Source of the DNA: Piromyces finnis finn
Taxonomy: Eukaryota; Fungi; Neocallimastigomycota
Direction of reading: 5' to 3'
NCBI GenBank assembly: GCA_002104945.1
Contig: MCFH01000013.1
Location: 558,001-622,000 of the forward strand
DNA length: 64,000 nucleotides
The notes under the pieces were generated by a model. That model was given only the letters and a program-made list of their open reading frames with translations, ran no database searches and had not been told where the DNA came from. Every line of letters begins with the position of its first letter. The first letter of the stretch is position 1. Positions 5,880 through 25,047 of this stretch are shown here, piece by piece. A program made the position numbers and the translations under genes.

Positions 5880-7150
5880 TGTTCCATTGTTTCTATGTTT
5901 CTATTCCAAGGACAAATGATCTTTTAGATTGTAATAATTATCGTGGTATATCTCTCATCAACATAGGTCTATAAATTATTTCAAAAATTGTAGCTGATAG
6001 AATTTCAAAGTATGCACTTTCTCATAACTTTATCAGGACCTTTCCAATCTGGTTTTCATAATAAAGAAGAATGTATTAGCTTATTTATATTCATTAGAGA
6101 AATATGTTATAGAAGAAAATTTAAAAGAAAAGCTACTTATGTTACTTTTATAGATTTAAAAAAAACATATAATTTTGTTCCTATTTTTAATATCCTTATA
6201 AAGCCATACAAATTAAGCATGCGTAGTAAATGTTTTAATTTCTCAATAATATATTCTACCTCAAATGCCTGTGCTTGTTTCTTGGATATACTTTCTAATA
6301 AATTTCCTATCAACTGTGGTGTAAGACAAGGATGTTCTCCTTTTCTTATACTCAATATGCTCTTAAGGAGATTTAAAGATATCTATCCTTGCAGGTATTT
6401 GTGCTGCGCAATAGGTGAAATGGAAGTAAAGCACTCAGATAGATTAACAACAAATTCATCAATTCAAATCGCCTATTGTATATTAGTCTCAACAAACCTC
6501 ACTTAAATTTTGGGAATTGAATTATTCGTATTTGATGCGATTATGAAAATACTACAAGAATTGGTATTGCTAGCAATAGAGCTGTTCCTGATTTTTCTCG
6601 TGTTTATTCATGTTGCGGATATGATGAACAGTCTTTTCATCTTTTTATATATAATAAATATAAGAATCAATTTACCACTTAATTACTCCTCGAAATGGAA
6701 ATAAAAAAAAAAATATTTATAACTATATTTTTATGTTCCGTATTGACGGAACTTTAGTTTATGATGAGCTACAAATCAATAAGATGGAACAGAGGCATTT
6801 AAATGAACAGTTTTACTGCTCATTGAGGTCTCATGCTCTCTATATAGAAGGTATAGAGGTTTTTTAAAGTAATCTCTATCATTCATAGCTCTATGAAGCT
6901 ACTTTTTGATAGGTTTAATAAGACACTTAATGTAATTAAGAGCACTGACATCGTACCAATATGCTGAAGGAACACTTCTAACATCAATGTTAGTATTTCT
7001 TTAAATGAAAACATTAAGAACTCCTGGGAAAAAGAATTAAGTGTCACCATACTATCATACCTGATATTACTTCTTTTTTTTTTTATTTCATTTAATTTAT
7101 TGGGAATGTGCTAATCTCTCACAGTATAAGCTACAGAGTTCATTGAACTT
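5880..7150 (+). mobile_element. Decayed, internally deleted non-LTR (LINE) retrotransposon ORF2 remnant
   Basis: From about 5900: SIPRTNDLLDCNNYRGISLINIGL*IISKIVADRI..FQSGFHNKEECISLF..TFIDLKKTYNFVP..CGVRQGCSP, i.e. the LINE RT motifs NYRxISL, F(L/I)DxxKAYD and GVRQG. The (Y/F)ADD box is not visible. A Cys-containing C-terminal-like segment follows (IIRI*CDYENTTRIGIAS..YSCCGYDEQSF). Stops and frameshifts throughout, no introns, GC higher than flanks. Confidence 0.88.
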
Positions 7151-16106: not shown

Positions 16107-17126
16107 TATTAACTATCATTTTAATTATAATTTATATTAAAGTTTATTCTATATATAAAACTGATTGTAGTTTTTTAAATTTCTAATTTATATTTATATT
16201 GACTAGTAAATTAACCATAATAAATAATAATGATATTTGATATTTGATAATATTTCTTTTTCTATTTTATAATTATTTCAATTATTTTATTATAGTTTAA
16301 ACGTCATGCCTTATTATAAGTATCTTTCCATATACATAATCCTTTTTATTAATTTAGTTTAAAATATAAAACTAATTAAAATTTTTTATGTTTAGTATTT
16401 TTTGTGTTGCACAATTTTTAACATTTTAGAATTAAATTAATATTTTAAAAAAGTTTTTAAGAAAAGTAAAGTTAATTAAAATAAAGTCAATGAAATTAGT
16501 TTTGTCTTTTTTTTTTTGTTATTTCTACATAATTTACATATTTATTATTATTATTTCTTGTATTTTATTTTTATTATATTTTTAAAATAAAATAAAGCTA
16601 ATTCTTTCAAAAAAATATACCTAATGTTGTGATCTTGAAAATTGTTTATAAAAGATATGATACATTAAAGAAATAGTATAATAGAGAAGTGAAAAGTTGT
16701 GATATGTGCAATTTAAACTTAAAAAAAAGTGTTATCGAATTAATTTAATATATTATTTATATCATTTATATTATCGCTTTTTAAAATGTTCTTTTTTTTT
16801 ATTTTTTAAAAATTAATAAATTTTATTTTTTTAAATTAATTAATTAAAAATTTAATTTTAATTGTTTTTTTTATTTTTTTTTTATTTTTTATTTTTATTG
16901 TTTAAATAATTACTTTTTAATATTTTTTATTTTTTTTTTTTTTATTTTTTTTATGTATTCCAATAATAGTTTATAATTATAATAATTTTTTTTTTGTAAA
17001 AAAAATATATAATTAATTTAAAGGTATTTTTTATATGCATTTTTAATTTATAAATATGTATTTGAATTTATTAATATGATTAACATTTAAAAATTATATA
17101 TAGATATATTATTTAAATTAAAAGGA

Positions 17127-18950
17127 ATGGCAAAAAAGGCTTTAAAGAGAAAAAATTCTGAAGTTGAAGAACTTCCAGAAGAAGTAAAAGAAACATTAAA
17201 AAATAAAGAAAAAGATAAAAATTCTGAAGAAAGAAAAAAATTATCTAAAAAGAAGTCAAATGTCACTATGAAGGAAAAACCAGAGAAAGAAAAAGTAGTA
17301 AAGGAAGAAAATGCTAAAAAAACAGAATCTCCAAATAAAAAAAAAAAGGCATCAAGGAAGTTGAGGAAAAAAAAAAGAATGAGAAATTAACAAAAAAAAG
17401 TAAAAAAGAAGAAGAAGAAATAGAAAAAAAGGAAGATGTAAAGAATAAGGAATCAAAGGAAGAAGATAATGAAAGTGAAAATGTAAAGGATGAAGAAAGG
17501 GAAGAAGAATCTAAAAATGATAAACATAAAAAGATTAGGGATATTAAAAATAAGAAAGAGAAAGAAAAGACTGATAATAATAAAAAAAGTAAAGATGTTA
17601 AAATTAAGAAAGAAAAAGAAGAAACTGATAATAATAAAAAGAATAAAGATGTTAAAAATAAAAAGGAAGAAGAAGAAGGAGAAGAAGAAGAAGAAGAAGA
17701 AGAAGAAGCTGATAATAATAAAAAGAGTAAAGATGCTAAAAATATGAAGGGAGAAAAAGAAGAAGCTGAAAATAATAAAAAGAACAAGGAAATTAAAAAT
17801 AAGAGGGAGAAAGAAGAAACTAAAAAGAATAGAGATGTTAAAAATAAGAAGAAGGAAGAAGAGAAACATGAAGAAGAATCAGAAGAATCAGAAGATGAAG
17901 AATTAGATGAAAAGGAAGAAAAAAGTAATGAAAAAGAAGAGAATGATAAAAAAATAAAAAACAGTAATAAGAAAATGGAAGAAAATAAAGAAGTAGATGA
18001 AGAAGGAGAATCTGAAGAATCTGAAGAGGAGGAGGAATCTGAAGAAGAAGAATCTGATGATGATGAGGAAGAAGAATCTGAAGAGGAATCTGAAGAAGGA
18101 TCTGAAGAAGGATCTGAAGAAGATGATAAAGATGATAAAGATGATTCTGATAGTTCTGAAGTAACTGAGGAATCTGAAAAGGAGAAAGAAGAACATAAAA
18201 AAGGCAAAACAGAAAAAAATAAAAGTGAAGAAGCAGAACCTGAAGAAGAAAAAATAAAGTCAGTAGGAACTTCAAAGAAAGATGGTAAAATGAGAATAGG
18301 TATATTTTATATGAGTACAAATGGTAAAACCAAGCAAATTGCGAATTATATTAAGAAAGGAATTATGAAGAAATATAATATTAAAGTAGATACAATCCTT
18401 ATTGAAGAAAATATCAAATATGATGTTAAAAAGTATCAAGTATGTTATATAAAATTATGTAATTATTAAAATATAATTGTTCTAATTATAAAAATATATA
18501 TTCAAGGGTATAATAATTGGTGGTCCTGTATACTATGGTGGATATTCAAGACATTTAACATCATTTATTGAGGCCAATGCTGAATACTTAAATAGTATAT
18601 TTACAGCTTTCTTTTCAGTTTCCTGTTATTCTGTTTCAATTGCATCACCATTTGAATATGATCCATTTATTAAAAATTATTTAAAATCAACCCTTTCTAA
18701 TGTATATAAACCACGTATAACCGCTAGTTTTGGTGGTGATTTAGCATATTCAAAATATTCACCATCAATTAAATGGGTTGCTAAAACATCAGCTTCTCAA
18801 ATAAAACAATATGTTAAAGATATTGATATTACTGACACTACTAAAGACCACTCTTTAACAAATTGGAAATGGGTAAATGATTTTGCTAATAAATTTGCTT
18901 CTGAAGCTATACCAAAGAAACTTTTATTAAAGGCTAGATCAAAACTTTAA
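17127..18950 (+). CDS. hemG: Lys/Glu-rich low-complexity protein fused to a C-terminal HemG-type long-chain flavodoxin (menaquinone-dependent protoporphyrinogen oxidase family, Flavodoxin_5). One intron (18440-18506) and an apparent 1-nt frameshift in the A11 tract at 17337-17347
   Basis: Domain from ATG 18290: MRIGIFYMSTNGKTKQIANYIKKG..KYQ|GIIIGGPVYYGGYSRHLTSFIEANAEYLNSIFTAFFSVS..FGGDLAYSKYS..TDTTKDHSLTNWKWVNDFANKF. It aligns motif by motif with recalled E. coli HemG (STRDGQT, VVIGASIRYGHY, AFYSVN, IAGALRYPRY, TDTRKEVVYTDWEQVANFA). The intron has a GTATGT donor and a TTCAAG acceptor and is in frame. Confidence 0.85.
17535..17870 (+). repeat. About six degenerate 17-18 aa coding tandem repeats, consensus KDVKNKKEKEETDNNKK(S/N), in the N-terminal extension of the HemG fusion
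   Basis: Recurrent units such as agt aaa gat gtt aaa att aag aaa gaa aaa gaa gaa act gat aat aat aaa aag; one unit carries a poly-Glu expansion. Confidence 0.75.
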
Positions 18951-19394: not shown

Positions 19395-22300
19395 TTATTT
19401 AATTTCATTGTCATTATTTTTGTTAGTTGAGATATTTTCATTAGAATTACTCATAAGCATTTTTTCTAATGCAAGTCTAATATCAGCAGTTTTTTCATCA
19501 TCATATATATATTCTTCCATGTTAGTAATTAACGGGCTTTCATTAGTAGAAGATATATAAGAATTTGGCGATTCTAATGGAAGAGCAGAGTTATTTTCTT
19601 GACTCAATACAGCTTTAATTACATAATCAAAGTCTTGTTGATTACTGTTAGAACAACATGAGTAATTTCTTTTGGTGATTGTATCATCAACTTGTTCTGT
19701 CTTTGTTCTTATTCTTGTAACATTCTTAGATTTTTTTGAATCATAATTTGATACTTTTGTATCTTGTGATTTAGATCTATTAAATAGTGACCATGTATTA
19801 CGTTTAATAGTATTACTATATGCGGAAGAAACTGTTGGACTTTGAACTTTAGATCTATATGATTTTATTGAGTCTGGTGAATTCATGGTACTGGAAGATA
19901 AAATATCATTAGAACTAGAGAACTGTTTTGACAATATTCTTAATTTATTACTAGTTGTAGAAATGGCATCACTATCATCTTTATTAATTTTATTGTTAGA
20001 ATATGGCTTGAAATCATAATGAACATTAGCAAAGAATAATTGATTACAGAAATAGGTTCTTACGGCTTCTACTTCTTGAAGCCATACGTTTTTATCATAT
20101 CTTGAAATTGATTCAAATTCATATTTATCATGATGGAAATGAACAACTTCAATTATATTTTTAGATTCTTTTGCATATAATAGTATTAATAATGAAATCA
20201 TTAATAATGTTTTAATTGAAAATAAAAAAATATTAAAATTCGCTATATATTATTAATTTTATTTTAATACCTTCTGTATCTAGTTTATCTAAGAACAATA
20301 TATTCTCAAGAGGAATTGGTTGTCTATATAGTATATATTGTTCTTTATCTTTTTTACATTTTAAAAATAATACCATATCAGTAAATACTAATATAGTAAT
20401 ATCTACAGTATGAGTTCCTTTTTTATTATAAATAAATTGCTTTTCCGATATTAATTCCCTTCTATCATTATCTATGGCAAATTTCTAAAATATTTTTTTA
20501 TATGTATGAATATAAAATATTAATAGTTTAATTAATTTGAGATATTGAAAATCTTTAAATATATCAAATAAAATTATTATTACAGGGAATATATTATTCC
20601 ATTCTAATGAACTTTCAATAACTCCAATTCTATATTTTGCTTCAGATTTTCTAACCATTTCATTAATAGTAGAAATCTTATTTTCAATTGAAAATATTAA
20701 AGTTTCAATCATAGAATATTGTAATTGTTGTTTATCAATGTTTTCTAGTAAACGTTTAAACAATAAAGGATATCTTGTGATTCTATGCATTGGTCTTTGT
20801 AGATATTATATTAAAAAATATCAGTATTATAGTATTATTAAAAATGTTATTTTTTTTAATATTATGATTATATAAAATTTCATACTTAATCAAAAGGTCT
20901 TTTAATGTTAATTTATCAAGGTTTTCATTTTCTTGACATTCATTAATTTTTTTCTCAATATTAGAGTTTTGCAATAATTTCTCTAAATGTCTTGTTGCAT
21001 TTGCTTGATTAGCACAATAAATGTAGTATTCATCAAAATCAGATATCTATATAGTTATGTAGTTGTTAGTTGATGTAATTTTATAAAATAAATATTAATA
21101 TTTATTTATACCTTTGTTCTGTAAGCATTAATAACTTGGGCACACAATGTAGTTATTTCTAAGTCATCTTTCTTTTTTATTTCTTCAATGTCTTCATTCT
21201 ATTTTATTATTTAATTATTATTTAATTAATATGTAATGATTTATATTTTCATTATAATTTAAATATATAATAATAAGTGTATATATATTATAGTTTATTA
21301 TGTTTTTTTTTGAAAACTAACAAGTTCAGCATGAATATCTAAGATATCCTCAATATTACTAAAAATAATATCTATATCATTGCTAGTTAAAAATTTTGAT
21401 TGGGCTAATGGTTCTTTGAAATACTATTAATATTGATTAATTAAAAATTTTCAATATTATTAAATATTAATTATACTTTTTTAAAATAATTGATAAAATA
21501 ATTATTATATAATATATATATTATAATATTACTTTAACAATCATATTTAAACATTTTAAATAGTAACACTCCAAGTTGCAAATTTCTTCTAAAATTTCTT
21601 TTTGTTTTAAATCGTTTTTATTTTCAACTTGCTTTTTCTATAATGGAAATATAAAAATGAAATTATTTAATTAATATTTATAATATTACGGTATATATAT
21701 AATTAAAATTTCATTATCTTACAGAGTCTTTTAATTTAACATGAATATCTTTTAGTTTTAGATTAAATAAAGTTTCTTGGAAATTTATTTTATGCTTCAA
21801 TATTGGTTCTTTTGTATTTTCAATTTCTATTTTATATATTATAATATATTTTATTATTAATTAATATATAATATAATTGATATATTAGGATAAGTAAATA
21901 TAGAAATTATTTAAAAACTTAAATACTTTTTTCTTCTTTATCTATTGTATATGTTAATTCATAATCTTTATATGTTCCATCCAATATGAATTTTTCGATT
22001 GCATTAATTATTAGCATTTCAGTAGTTGTTTCATTTGTTGCGTAAAATGATTTTGTTAAGTCTGTACAATCTGTAATATTCTTACAACAAATTTTAATGA
22101 CTTCACCTTCACTAATATCTTCTTTCTATTTATTTGAAGAAACATTTATAATCTTAATTATATTTATTTATTTTTTAATTTTAAAAATATCTATAATATA
22201 TTAAAGGGATGTAAATTACATTAGATGAATCCATATTTCCCGTTTCATTTTTCTTTAATTTTGATTCTTCAAGTAATTTTGTAAGACATAATCTATATCT

Positions 22301-25047
22301 AGTCATTTCATGTTTTAATGAATCTAATTTTTTTTGTGATTTTTCAATTTGACCAAAAATTTCTGTTGGTTGTACATTTTTATGACTTTTAGAAGATCTC
22401 ATAAATGATGGTAATGGTGAATTTCTTGCTTTTGTTAATTTTTCAAGACCATCTCTAATCTTTAATTCAATATCGAGTTCATGTTGAATTGCTTTCATTT
22501 TCATTTGAATTCTATTTATATTTTGTGATTTTAATGCCTAAAGTAATTGAACAATATAATATTAGTTGTGTAACTAAATTAAATTTTAATAAAATAATTT
22601 ACATAATAATAAAATAATAACTTACATCTTCACCATATTCATCCATTAATACTGAAGATGTATGTTCTAAACAATTAACTTTGATAAGATTTCTACAATA
22701 TTTATGACAGGACATATTACAAACTAAACATTTGCCATATATTATATATGAAATAACAATTATTAAATTGAAAAACAATTTATAATGAATATTTATTATT
22801 ACCTTCGCATTTATAGGCCAGTGAATCATCATTTTTATCTATTTTTTCAAAAAGTAATTTTTTATAGCAATATTCGCAAAAGACACAATCTTTTTCAGTA
22901 TTTTGAACAAAAGTATGTCCAAATTTTAGTTGATCTACAAGATTATTTATATTAGCAGTCTATATTGATTTATTTAATATATTGTTAGTTTAATGATTAA
23001 TTATAAACAATTATTAATAAATAATTATTGAAAAACTCATTTTTTAATTAAAATATATTCATAAATAACATACAATTGATTTTCTAAAACTTTGCTCTTT
23101 TAATAATGGTGACATAATTGATTTTTCTTCTGGTAATCCATCAGTTTTTAATTTTTTAAGCCTTTGATTTTTATTATTGTCCCCATTAATTGATGTTTGA
23201 CTTATAGATGATGTAGTTTGATTTTGACTACTGAAACTTACTTTATCATTAATACTTTCAATACTCATTTTTACAGAATCTATCATTATCATTTATAATG
23301 TTATTTTATTTAGAAATTTAAATTATTAATAAAAATATGATATAAAATTTTATGTACTTTTTTTATCCATTTTTGCAAGGTTAGGTTTAACTTCTGATAT
23401 TAATTTTGAATTAAGAATATCACAAAAATTAATTTCAAAGCAATTTATATAACTCTCAACCTTTTCTACTATTTCTACTGAATCAAAAAAATCTATAGGA
23501 AGATCAAGTATTCTTTCGATTGCTCTTTGAAATTGACTTTAATAATAAAATAAATAAAAGTTATTCATATATCTAACAATTATTTATATATGTGTACGAG
23601 CAATTAATACTTACCTTGTTGTAATATTCATTGATCCCTCTATATATGGAATTAATTAGCATAAATTAATTTATTATTTTTTATTAGTATTTATGGTTTT
23701 ATCGTTCTTATTATTTCAATATTAATAATTCAAATATTATTTAACTTTAAAACTTTTATATTTACTTATGTCATTCTTTAATTCTTTATAGAATATACTT
23801 TTTTCAAATGATTCACCAGTTTCATCAATTCTTGAGTCATCAATATCAATTCTTGGGTATACAGATCTATCTACATATTCTGTTAACTCACCATAAAAAG
23901 CTTTTTCTAGAATAATCATAGACAAATATATAAATCTATCAAAAATTTGTGGATCAGGACAATCTAATTCTCTATATACAAAATAGTTTAAGTCTTCTAA
24001 ACAAGAACTATATATATCTTCAACAAATCTCCATTCAATATAATTTGGTGAAGATGGTACAAAATAACAATTATATATTTTTGTTGCTTGATTTTTTCTA
24101 CCACTTGTATTATATAAATAATAATTTGTTCTGAATTCTTCAGCTTCAGATCTAAAGAGCTTTTTATATAAATAATATATAAATAATTATAATATATTTT
24201 ATTACATATATTATTTATTAATAAAAATTATGAATTGTAAATATTTTATATTATATATTATAAATATTAATGTTTTTTTAAAAATAAAATTATTGACAGT
24301 ATATAGAGGTTTTATATTATAAATGTTATATTATTATTTAATTATCGATAAAAATATATTTACATATATTAATGAAAGTGTATTTCCTTTAGAAAGAAGG
24401 TACATGAAAAAATACAATCTTGTTAAAGGATGATTCCAAATATCTGGCATGTACAAAGATGAATTACTTAATTCATTTCTAGTTGAATTTAGTGCTAAAA
24501 ATGATAAATTTGATGAACATACTGATGGTTCATCCTGGAATGTATTAATTGAACGAACACTATCTAATAAATTCAATGAACTTCCAACTCCTTGTTTTTG
24601 TGGAGTTTTTGCAGATTTTAATACCTTTGATAATGAAGAATATTCATCAATTACCGAGTTAATTGAATAGGAAGATTTTGATCGACATAAACTATTATTT
24701 GTTTTTTTTTGAATTGGTTCTGAATCATCTTCATCTTTTAAACTTACAAAATAACTTCCTTCAATTTCATTATTACTATCTCTAAGATTGTTATTGCTTT
24801 CATCACAATTTCCTTGATCAATAATACTTTCACTATCACTATTTCTACATAAACTAGTTTCTGATATTATTTTAGATTTTAAAGATATACTATTTATTTC
24901 CCCATTATATGAACATATTGATAATTTTGATCTTGGTGTATAACTATTACTAGTTATTTCATTATCATTACTTCTAATTTTTCCAATACTTCCATGTATT
25001 GAGTTGACATAAATGTCGGATGAACTTTTATTAATACTACTTGCCAT
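19395..25047 (-). CDS. Multidomain Rho guanine-nucleotide exchange factor: RGS-like, C1, HR1, RA-like, DH, PH
   Basis: RGS-like: IWNHPLTRLYFFMYLL..LFRSEAEEFR..QATKIYNCYFVPSSPNY..CPDPQIFD..YPRI. C1: HTFVQNTEKDCVFCEYC..YKCE|VCNMSCHKYCRNLIKVNC. HR1: IQHELDIELKIRDGLEKL..EKSQKKLDSLKHEM. RA-like: VIKICCKN..TKSFYATNETTTEMLIINAIEKFILDGTYKDYEL. DH: QKEILEEICNLECYYLKCL..FSNIEDILDIH..MHRITRYPLLFKRLL. PH ends YEFESISRYDKNVWLQEV. The start codon is less certain. Confidence 0.85.

Follow-up and report, generated by a model that had tools for sequence, protein, structure and literature searches.

A HemG-like gene with spliceosomal introns in Piromyces finnis

The window analysed here, a 64,000-nucleotide stretch of the Piromyces finnis genome (contig MCFH01000013.1, positions 558,001 to 622,000), carries a gene whose 3′ end encodes a HemG-like domain of 197 residues (Table 1). 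Direct reading of the window identifies a first domain exon opened by an ATG codon, an intron with GTATGT...CAAG borders that contains an in-frame stop codon (18467-18469), and a second exon ending with TAA. The product of the spliced exons includes the motifs STNGKT, IIIGGPVYYG, AFFSVS, FGGDLAYSKY, TDTTKDHSLTNW and VNDFA, so that all the motifs and the intron quoted in the first-pass annotation were recovered. This annotation had also described a complete long-chain flavodoxin of 197 aa. The domain is indeed present with every motif, but it is not a stand-alone protein, since in relatives it forms the C-terminal part of an ORF of 433-452 aa. In the window itself, the ATG at 18290 lies inside an ORF that extends from 17744 to 18469, so the frame is already open before it.

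Table 1. Features of the HemG-like gene in the window.
Feature	Coordinates	Strand	Remarks
Probable 5′-UTR intron (GT 17024-17025, AG 17123-17124)	17024..17124	+	Homology only: the window has donor and acceptor motifs where L004, L005 and L008 have their intron
Lys/Glu/Ser-rich disordered N-terminal arm, ~388 codons, start ATG 17127	17127..18289	+	Collinear with the intact ORFs of relatives (alignment)
Tandem 54/57/102-nt repeats (18-19-aa Lys-rich units) lengthening the arm here	17514..17921	+	Tandem Repeats Finder scores 167-220
12/33-nt tandem repeats, acidic and rich in GAA/GAT, inside the arm	17996..18145	+	Tandem Repeats Finder
Domain exon 1: codons 1-50 of the HemG-like Flavodoxin_5 domain, including the FMN phosphate loop STNGKT	18290..18439	+	ATG 18290 is the junction codon
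Domain intron: spliceosomal, 67 nt, GT-AG, phase 0 after ...KKYQ	18440..18506	+	Same site split in relatives and spliced out in transcripts
Domain exon 2: last 147 codons of the domain and TAA; GGPVYYG and AFFSVS loops, HemG-type insert LAYSKYSPSIK..., TDTTKDHSLTNW motif	18507..18950	+	Flavodoxin_5 44 bits; HemG model positions 51-173

The site of the domain intron is interrupted in four genomic lineages, always at the same phase-0 position and with GT-AG borders, by introns of 67 nt (window), 73 nt (L004), 133 nt (Neocallimastix californiae) and ~187 nt (L108). This intron is spliced out in all four transcript contigs from related gut fungi (L001, L097, L098 and L099). For instance, the transcript L001 and the genomic contig L004, which correspond to the same species, are 99.6-100% identical, and two introns are missing from L001. 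The second of these is a 110-nt GT-AG intron located just 5′ of the MAKKAL start codon in the genomic contigs L004, L005 and L008, and the corresponding motifs in the window point to a probable 5′-UTR intron in the P. finnis gene as well. The domain intron is a genuine spliceosomal intron, as first proposed, with splicing observed in the RNA of relatives.

The GC content varies from 14 to 24% across the window and is 18% in the HemG-like gene itself. Moreover, synteny comparison indicates that the same LRR and RhoGEF neighbours are found in N. californiae/lanati and in metagenome contigs. With its two introns, its host-like GC content and a fungal synteny conserved in several assemblies, the gene is integrated in the host genome, in agreement with the fungal setting described in the first-pass annotation, and bacterial contamination was ruled out.

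In relatives, the domain is fused to a fungus-specific arm

In relatives, the HemG-like domain is the C-terminal portion of a single ORF beginning with MAKKALKRK, whose start is equivalent to position 17127 of the window. Such single ORFs (439, 452 and 433 aa) are present in the transcripts L097-L099, and the ORF is also uninterrupted in the genomic contigs L004, L005, L007, L008 and L108. The N-terminal arm of these proteins (240-255 aa) is Lys/Glu-rich and disordered, and it matched no family in Pfam. The HemG-like domain thus forms, in relatives, the C-terminal end of a protein that also carries a long arm specific to these fungi. This corrects the public annotation, in which two separate short genes of 167 and 169 aa are given for N. 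californiae. A word-index protein search, with exon 1 included in a long query or with the domain in the 452-aa relative, yielded no matches and no long annotated homologue, and the protein databases searched contained no full-length model of the fusion.

In the window, the arm is longer, with ~145 residues that are missing from the aligned relatives, and it is encoded in two frames: frame 0 up to ~17336 and frame 2 from 17339, the break being located within a run of 11 A (17337-17347). The product of the window gene would be ~585 aa long, with this single frame break. N. californiae/lanati also shows a frame break, together with an in-frame stop codon in place of Trp170, and two assemblies agree on it. 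In these genomes and in that of P. finnis, the gene may thus be decaying or its fusion interrupted. If the breaks are real, the 197-aa domain could be produced alone, translation beginning at the junction ATG (18290) on a shorter transcript or by re-initiation. The agreement of the two assemblies on the N. californiae break and the annotation of two separate genes in that genome speak for this scenario. The distribution of the junction residue is also consistent with it, since a Met is found exactly in the window, L004 and N. californiae, two of which have an upstream frame break, while the residue is Phe in L097, L098 and L108 and Ile in L099. However, L004 has the junction Met without any break, the window break lies in a homopolymer, a typical site of assembly errors, and the arm downstream of it remains open and collinear with the intact ORFs of relatives. 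Moreover, the four known transcripts (L001 and L097-L099) all begin upstream of the MAKKAL codon. We consider production of the domain alone unlikely, though not negligibly so.

Assignment of the domain to the HemG/Flavodoxin_5 family

Exon 2 alone matches the Pfam family Flavodoxin_5 (PF12724) with 44.2 bits, well above the gathering cut-off of 27 bits, and full-length relatives reach 69-70 bits. The two exons of the window cover positions 1-49 and 51-173 of the NCBIfam HemG model; since the two pieces map end to end on this model, the domain is one unit across the splice. The scores obtained with the window exons are 51.4 and 20.2 bits. The best NCBIfam match over the whole length is also the HemG model, with 77 bits compared to 33 bits for FldA. 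The relatives P0002 and L099 score 77.3 and 73.3 bits, respectively, with this model (NF008316). The fungal domain retains the family-invariant residues Gly12, Thr14, Gly127, Tyr131, Tyr134, Thr168 and Trp170.

The AlphaFold model of P0002, which is 90% identical to the window domain, has a pLDDT of 94.5 and matches a cluster of the ESM Atlas named 'protoporphyrinogen IX dehydrogenase [quinone]' (TM 0.82/0.91, rmsd 1.8 Å over 175 residues), both structures being predicted. Two PDB searches recovered no solved structure of the HemG type, and the similarity of the P0002 model to solved ordinary flavodoxins is limited to TM values of 0.4-0.5 (Z 13-14.5). With long-chain flavodoxins and with FldH, a flavodoxin that binds haem (PDB 8g64), the fungal domain has in common an alpha/beta fold of the flavodoxin type and an FMN site. 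The insert of these proteins is different, and they resemble the domain only marginally in sequence (E 0.005 or worse, restricted to the N-terminal half). According to these models, the fungal domain has the three-dimensional architecture of the HemG type. Profile scores and predicted fold thus agree with the family assignment of the first-pass annotation.

A divergent HemG-like protein outside the canonical clade

The first-pass annotation had further identified the gene as a bacterial-type HemG. The family assignment stood, but the identification as a canonical HemG did not. The equivalog cut-off of the model NF008316 (HemG/PgdH1, menaquinone-dependent protoporphyrinogen IX dehydrogenase) is 142 bits for the whole protein; canonical members score 180-205 bits and other bacterial homologues 115-148 bits, whereas the fungal proteins reach only 73-77 bits. 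In a tree of 71 rows, the fungal sequences are kept apart, with 100/100 support, from the canonical clade of 14 rows that includes E. coli HemG. They share with this clade only one of nine signature residues, the equivalent of E. coli Y59, and do not have the clade-specific Asn88, Arg92, Lys93, Asn102, Tyr104, Val121, Ile139 and Met143 of E. coli HemG. On these sequence criteria, the fungal domain appears to be a divergent member of a broad HemG-like group, outside the validated gammaproteobacterial/Leishmania HemG (PgdH1) clade. An AU test did not reject the grouping of the fungi with the canonical clade (p 0.83), and the fungal clade might thus still be the sister group of true HemG.

The fungal domain and E. 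coli HemG share the Flavodoxin_5 family, the full-length architecture and a predicted fold with a long insert. Both also have the FMN phosphate loop and a GxxxYG loop, a Tyr-x-x-Tyr motif within the insert, and T-x-W. E. coli HemG nevertheless aligns with the fungal domain with only 53 bits, compared to 95-153 bits with bacterial homologues, and the fungal domain differs by the absence of the ARK segment, by its intron and by a disordered N-terminal arm of 240-390 aa. In canonical proteins, the insert loop (E. coli residues 124-149) contains conserved Tyr, Tyr and Arg residues (L. major Y134, Y137 and R142), of which L. major Y137 is essential (PMC4114063). Tyr131 and Tyr134 of the fungal insert are the counterparts of Y134 and Y137, and a Lys replaces the key arginine R142. 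The fungal insert is 4-6 residues longer than that of E. coli HemG, and its helix deviates from the family consensus by the replacement of Met by Ala and of Ile by Ser. Non-canonical members generally have the insert motif too.

The nearest relatives, by score and in the tree, are HemG-like Flavodoxin_5 proteins found outside Gammaproteobacteria (in Gemmatimonadota, Acidobacteriota, Myxococcota, Bdellovibrionota and haloarchaea). In these proteins, as in the fungal domain, a Ser-rich loop in the 90s replaces the canonical Asn...Arg-Lys; unlike the fungal proteins, they are stand-alone (~180-200 aa) and score higher with the HemG model. HemG homologues outside the gammaproteobacterial clade have been held to be probably not protoporphyrinogen oxidases, and the Bdellovibrio protein BD2899 failed to complement a hemG mutant (PMC4231631).

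A genuine oxygen-independent protoporphyrinogen IX dehydrogenase, which would oxidize protoporphyrinogen salvaged or taken up from the rumen and pass electrons from FMN to a quinone or to fumarate reductase, as in E. coli or Leishmania, is nonetheless an alternative to be weighed. It would account for the best and full-length match to the HemG model, for the resemblance to PgdH1-named clusters and for the HemG-type insert with both tyrosines, all the more as Lys is found at the position of the arginine in some canonical members, such as P0034; the result of the AU test is also compatible with it. Against this reading stand a score of about half the equivalog cut-off, the position outside the validated clade and the absence of eight of nine signature residues, which weaken the case for a true HemG function, as well as the behaviour of the non-clade homologues and a highly charged disordered arm, which the bacterial proteins, being stand-alone, do not have. 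Moreover, haem synthesis is incomplete in N. lanati, for which haem is essential (PMC8561657). We regard a true HemG activity as unlikely, and protoporphyrinogen oxidation by this domain as possible but unsupported.

Likely bacterial origin of the domain

A search of 1.84 billion representatives gave a single match below 1e-30, corresponding to the gut-fungal cluster, and the next match was only 31% identical (2e-18). No other fungal or eukaryotic homologue was found in this search. Many of the 150 best matches carry no taxon label, and all the labelled relatives beyond gut fungi are prokaryotic, with at most 33% identity. The 80 named loci retrieved with an alignment of eight sequences are all bacterial or haloarchaeal, and the look-alike clusters among those listed in the ESM Atlas are bacterial or archaeal. 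Since all the labelled relatives outside gut fungi are prokaryotic, an origin of the domain by horizontal transfer from bacteria, as put forward in the first-pass annotation, is likely.

A quick tree of 129 rows was suboptimal, a constrained search having reached a tree better by 41 log-likelihood units, and placement was therefore judged on the careful tree of 71 rows. This tree shows no supported nesting among prokaryotes, the support for the nearest rows being 55/70. The stem leading to the fungi is very long, at ~2 substitutions per site, and the sequences have a strong AT bias with a composition warning. The tree thus gives no supported sister group for the fungal clade. Such a topology would also be compatible with an ancient flavodoxin-like gene of eukaryotes or fungi, inherited vertically and lost elsewhere, or with bacterial contamination. 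Vertical descent was rejected in view of the exhaustive search described above and of a survey of 33 eukaryotes in which no hemG was found (PMC4231631), and contamination conflicts with the introns, the low GC content and the synteny, making these explanations extremely improbable.

The nearest neighbours in the tree, P0023 and P0024, are encoded in tightly packed operon-like contexts. In a weak and partial test, the neighbours of bacterial homologues included regulators, P-type ATPases, an ABC transporter, a hemerythrin and Pyr_redox_2 proteins, and no haem genes were present among the real neighbours scanned. When the neighbours around the 80 bacterial homologues were clustered, shadow ORFs from genomes of high GC content dominated the result.

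The only other HemG-family gene reported in a eukaryote, that of Leishmania major (LMJF_06_1280), has also been explained by bacterial transfer (PMC4114063). The L. major protein is ~50% identical to E. coli HemG, complements a hemG mutant, and is encoded beside HemF, working with ferrochelatase in a partial pathway (PMC4114063). In contrast, identity between the fungal domain and prokaryotic homologues does not exceed 33%, and the haem pathway of its hosts has been reported as incomplete (PMC8561657). HemG-family genes have been regarded as essentially bacterial, with Leishmania as the sole eukaryotic exception, and a 2026 review states that HemG is present 'only in enterics' (PMC13564367). 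In the literature searched, we found no paper linking HemG to gut fungi, which represent a second eukaryotic lineage with a HemG-family gene. In this lineage, the gene has gained introns, has been fused to a long arm, is transcribed (in relatives) and is under purifying selection, yet the hosts are haem auxotrophs.

Putative function and selection

Taken together, these data lead us to favour, with slightly better than even confidence, a gene restricted to anaerobic gut fungi, the product of which would have as its last 197 residues a HemG-like, FMN-binding Flavodoxin_5 domain of bacterial ancestry, non-canonical with respect to HemG. After the transfer, this gene would have gained spliceosomal introns and would have been fused, or extended in 5′, to the long Lys/Glu-rich disordered arm, producing proteins of ~433-452 aa in relatives and ~585 aa in P. 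finnis. The presence of the FMN-loop motifs suggests that the domain still binds FMN and works most likely as a redox module (a dehydrogenase or an electron transfer protein); it should not be taken for a functional haem-synthesis enzyme in a fungus auxotrophic for haem.

The first-pass annotation had mentioned that Neocallimastix needs haem and that haems trigger the release of zoospores. Both points are present in the literature: passages of PMC7609409 and PMC8561657, citing Orpin & Greenwood 1986, mention the haem requirement and the induction of zoospore release by haems and porphyrins. The domain could accordingly be imagined as a protein that binds tetrapyrroles or flavins in a regulatory or non-catalytic role, for instance a haem/porphyrin carrier or sensor related to auxotrophy or zoospore release, with the arm as a tether. 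Besides the biology of the hosts, the unusual helix of the insert agrees with such a role, and FldH aligns with the P0002 model over 163 residues (Z 13.8), further than any other solved structure in the comparison. However, this match is tied with those of ordinary flavodoxins and is not accompanied by sequence similarity, and it was set aside as a functional clue. The conservation of all the FMN-loop residues better fits a working flavoprotein, and we consider a purely binding role quite improbable. More speculatively, gut fungi, unable to make haem, might have retained remnants of the last steps of a bacterial-type haem pathway (HemN-, HemG- and ferrochelatase-like proteins). The arm-tethered HemG-like domain would then still oxidize or bind porphyrins or porphyrinogens, within a machinery for the salvage or sensing of external haems and porphyrins and for the zoospore release that they trigger; we give this scenario little credence. 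The gene allows one to test whether the handling of tetrapyrroles by gut fungi uses co-opted bacterial parts. More generally, it offers a concrete candidate, which can be cloned, for studying the role of non-canonical HemG-like flavoproteins, in bacteria as well.

The domain is kept by purifying selection, with dN/dS of 0.12-0.15 at dS of 0.44-0.95, across lineages differing by up to ~1 synonymous substitution per site. The strength of this selection fits the favoured FMN redox module and would be expected from a true HemG as well. For the first 70-100 codons of the arm, dN/dS ranges from 0.07 to 0.33 among the closer lineages.

Gene structure and splicing

Direct reading of the window between 17900 and 19400 showed that splicing of the two exons (Table) gives a product of 197 amino acids, in which all the motifs quoted in the first-pass annotation are present. 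The sequence between them starts with GTATGT and ends with CAAG, and the ORF that enters it from exon 1 stops at 18469 because an in-frame stop codon sits inside this interval. Both exon pieces match Pfam Flavodoxin_5 and they cover positions 1–49 and 51–173 of the NCBIfam HemG model (NF008316). These positions adjoin, so that the splice restores a single uninterrupted domain; the exons thus match both models proposed earlier as a check. The G+C content is 14–24% along the entire window.

The claimed GT-AG spliceosomal intron is borne out by transcript and genomic contigs of relatives. The transcript-type contig L001 (1458 nt, JGI sample) is 99.6–100% identical to the genomic metagenome contigs L004, L005 and L008 and lacks two of their segments, both GT-AG, one of 110 nt in the 5′ UTR and one of 73 nt at the site of the window's intron. 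Contigs L097, L098 and L099, transcript-like and from further lineages (82–84% nucleotide identity to exon 2 of the window), are likewise uninterrupted at this site. In genomic DNA of four lineages, the intron occupies an identical phase-0 site after …KKYQ and varies in sequence as it does in length. These comparisons argue strongly that the domain intron is real, the RNA support coming from related lineages. The 5′-UTR intron of the L001/L004 pair ends 2–3 bases ahead of the start codon and has a probable counterpart in the window.

Features of the HemG-like gene, its relatives and its surroundings
Feature	Contig	Position	Strand	Remarks
5′-UTR intron, probable	window	~17024–17124
Equivalent start ATG	window	17127		arm ~388 codons
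A11 run	window	17337–17347		frame break
Tandem repeats, 54/57/102 nt	window	17514–17921		within arm
Tandem repeats, 12/33 nt	window	17996–18145		within arm
ORF entering intron	window	17744–18469
Domain exon 1	window	18290–18439
Domain intron	window	18440–18506		67 nt
Domain exon 2	window	18507–18950		product read from 18507–18947
RhoGEF gene, large	window	19395–25047	minus	HR1, RhoGEF and PH domains in orthologues; syntenic in all related contigs
Domain intron	L004			73 nt
Domain intron	N. californiae/lanati			133 nt
Domain intron	L108			~187 nt
5′-UTR intron	L004	4934–5043		110 nt
Gene copy	L002/L003 (N. californiae/lanati)	6001–6760		GCA_050613775.1, GCA_002104975.1
HemG-like gene and neighbours	L094	3860–5588
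HemG-like gene and neighbours	L093	136–1336

The domain is part of a longer predicted protein

The flavodoxin had been described as complete at 197 residues. This is contradicted by the reading frame, which remains open 5′ of the ATG at 18290, and by the continuous ORFs of relatives: 439, 452 and 433 amino acids, one per transcript, in L097, L098 and L099, respectively. In the genomic gut-fungal contigs L004, L005, L007, L008 and L108, one ORF opens with MAKKALKRK, continues across a Lys/Glu/Ser-rich stretch and leads directly into the domain. The junction residue is Phe in L097, L098 and L108 and Ile in L099, so that a domain-level translation start is impossible in these lineages. Judged from these sequences, the 197-residue unit is a domain of a longer predicted protein, and not the whole protein. 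The N-terminal arm is rich in Lys (~26%) and Glu (~30%), gave no match in a Pfam search, and shows dN/dS of 0.07–0.33 over its first 70–100 codons among the closer lineages; it is therefore coding. In the window it is ~145 residues longer than in five related lineages, through tandem repeats. A search of a word-indexed protein collection found no long homologue on record.

The window arm contains one frame break, either genuine or introduced during assembly. L001 has one A fewer (~497) in a different A-run than L004, L005, L007 and L008, which breaks its ORF and could reflect assembly error, reverse-transcription error or transcriptional slippage. In the N. californiae/lanati copy, a stop codon in frame takes the place of Trp170 (HSLTK*KW), past which frame and conservation persist up to the normal stop; the frame is also broken between arm and domain, within a run of Lys codons. 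Both features are the same in the two assemblies. They could mean that the gene has recently decayed or undergone fission in this lineage, and in the public annotation it appears as two separate short genes (167 and 169 aa).

The gene is present in six gut-fungal lineages, including N. californiae/lanati. The domain evolves with dN/dS of 0.12–0.15 (dS 0.44 between the window and L004, ~0.95 between the window and N. californiae). The embedding among fungal genes reported previously is confirmed by flanks conserved in relatives: an LRR gene lies upstream, and the RhoGEF gene, oriented the opposite way, lies downstream.

A HemG-like domain outside the canonical clade

The best NCBIfam match is the HemG model, at full length. 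Gut-fungal proteins reach 73–77 bits on it, where the curated cut-off is 142; proteins of the E. coli clade reach 180–205 bits and other bacterial homologues 115–148 bits. In direct comparison with E. coli HemG, the window protein gives 53 bits and bacterial homologues give 95–153 bits. Family-wide residues are retained (Gly12, Thr14, Gly127, Tyr131, Tyr134, Thr168 and Trp170). Tyr131 and Tyr134 correspond to Y134 and Y137 of Leishmania major HemG, of which Y137 is essential (PMC4114063), whereas its R142 is replaced by Lys. The fungal protein has one of nine signature positions of the canonical clade, rare outside it, and lacks the canonical Asn…Arg-Lys segment past the third strand. The assignment to HemG thus holds for family membership, but not for canonical HemG.

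The AlphaFold model of a gut-fungal protein 90% identical to the window's domain (pLDDT 94.5) resembles ESM Atlas clusters that bear the name protoporphyrinogen IX dehydrogenase [quinone] (TM 0.82/0.91). Among solved structures it has only generic flavodoxin matches (Z 13–14.5), and two PDB searches found no solved HemG-type structure. FldH (8g64), a flavodoxin with bound haem, ranks level with the other flavodoxins; a non-catalytic tetrapyrrole or flavin binder, which such a protein brings to mind, appears improbable.

Origin of the domain

In an exhaustive search of 1.84 billion representatives, only the gut-fungal cluster came in below 1e-30, and the match ranked after it was 31% identical (2e-18). 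The 80 genome loci with a name belong without exception to bacteria or haloarchaea (21–33% identity), most commonly to Gemmatimonadota, Acidobacteriota, Myxococcota and Pseudomonadota. Placement was judged on a careful 71-row tree, in which the fungal clade (100/100) has a stem of ~2 substitutions per site and lies outside the canonical HemG clade (100/100). The nearest rows, P0023 and P0024, are joined with support of just 55/70, composition bias was flagged for the fungal and canonical groups, and a grouping of the fungi with the canonical clade was not rejected by an AU test (p 0.83). Overall, a bacterial origin is the best reading of the sequence data. The proposed horizontal acquisition is therefore upheld as to prokaryotic affinity, but not by a well-supported donor group.

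Possible function

In the literature searched, we found no paper tying HemG or protoporphyrinogen oxidase to gut fungi, and the gene is absent from the text of two horizontal-transfer surveys and from those of their supplements that were examined. The haem requirement and haem-triggered zoospore release mentioned earlier are indeed reported for gut fungi: in N. lanati the haem pathway is incomplete and haem is required (PMC8561657), and zoospore release can be induced by haems and porphyrins (PMC7609409, citing Orpin & Greenwood 1986). Validated HemG is known from Gammaproteobacteria and Leishmania, and Protox activity of outlying homologues is doubted (PMC4231631; PMC13564367). A true protoporphyrinogen dehydrogenase, as the model match and retained tyrosines might suggest, is unlikely, albeit less so than the non-catalytic binder. 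The product would rather be a conserved FMN redox domain carried on a fungus-specific charged arm.

No haem genes occur among the neighbours of those bacterial homologues that were examined. The bacterial genes nearest to the fungal clade in the tree, P0023 and P0024, lie in tightly packed, operon-like settings at loci L094 and L093, where gaps of 1 nt separate the HemG-like genes from a Pyr_redox_2 flavoprotein gene and from a hemerythrin gene. This is a hint of redox or oxygen-linked function in the non-canonical group, rather than of a haem-synthesis context.
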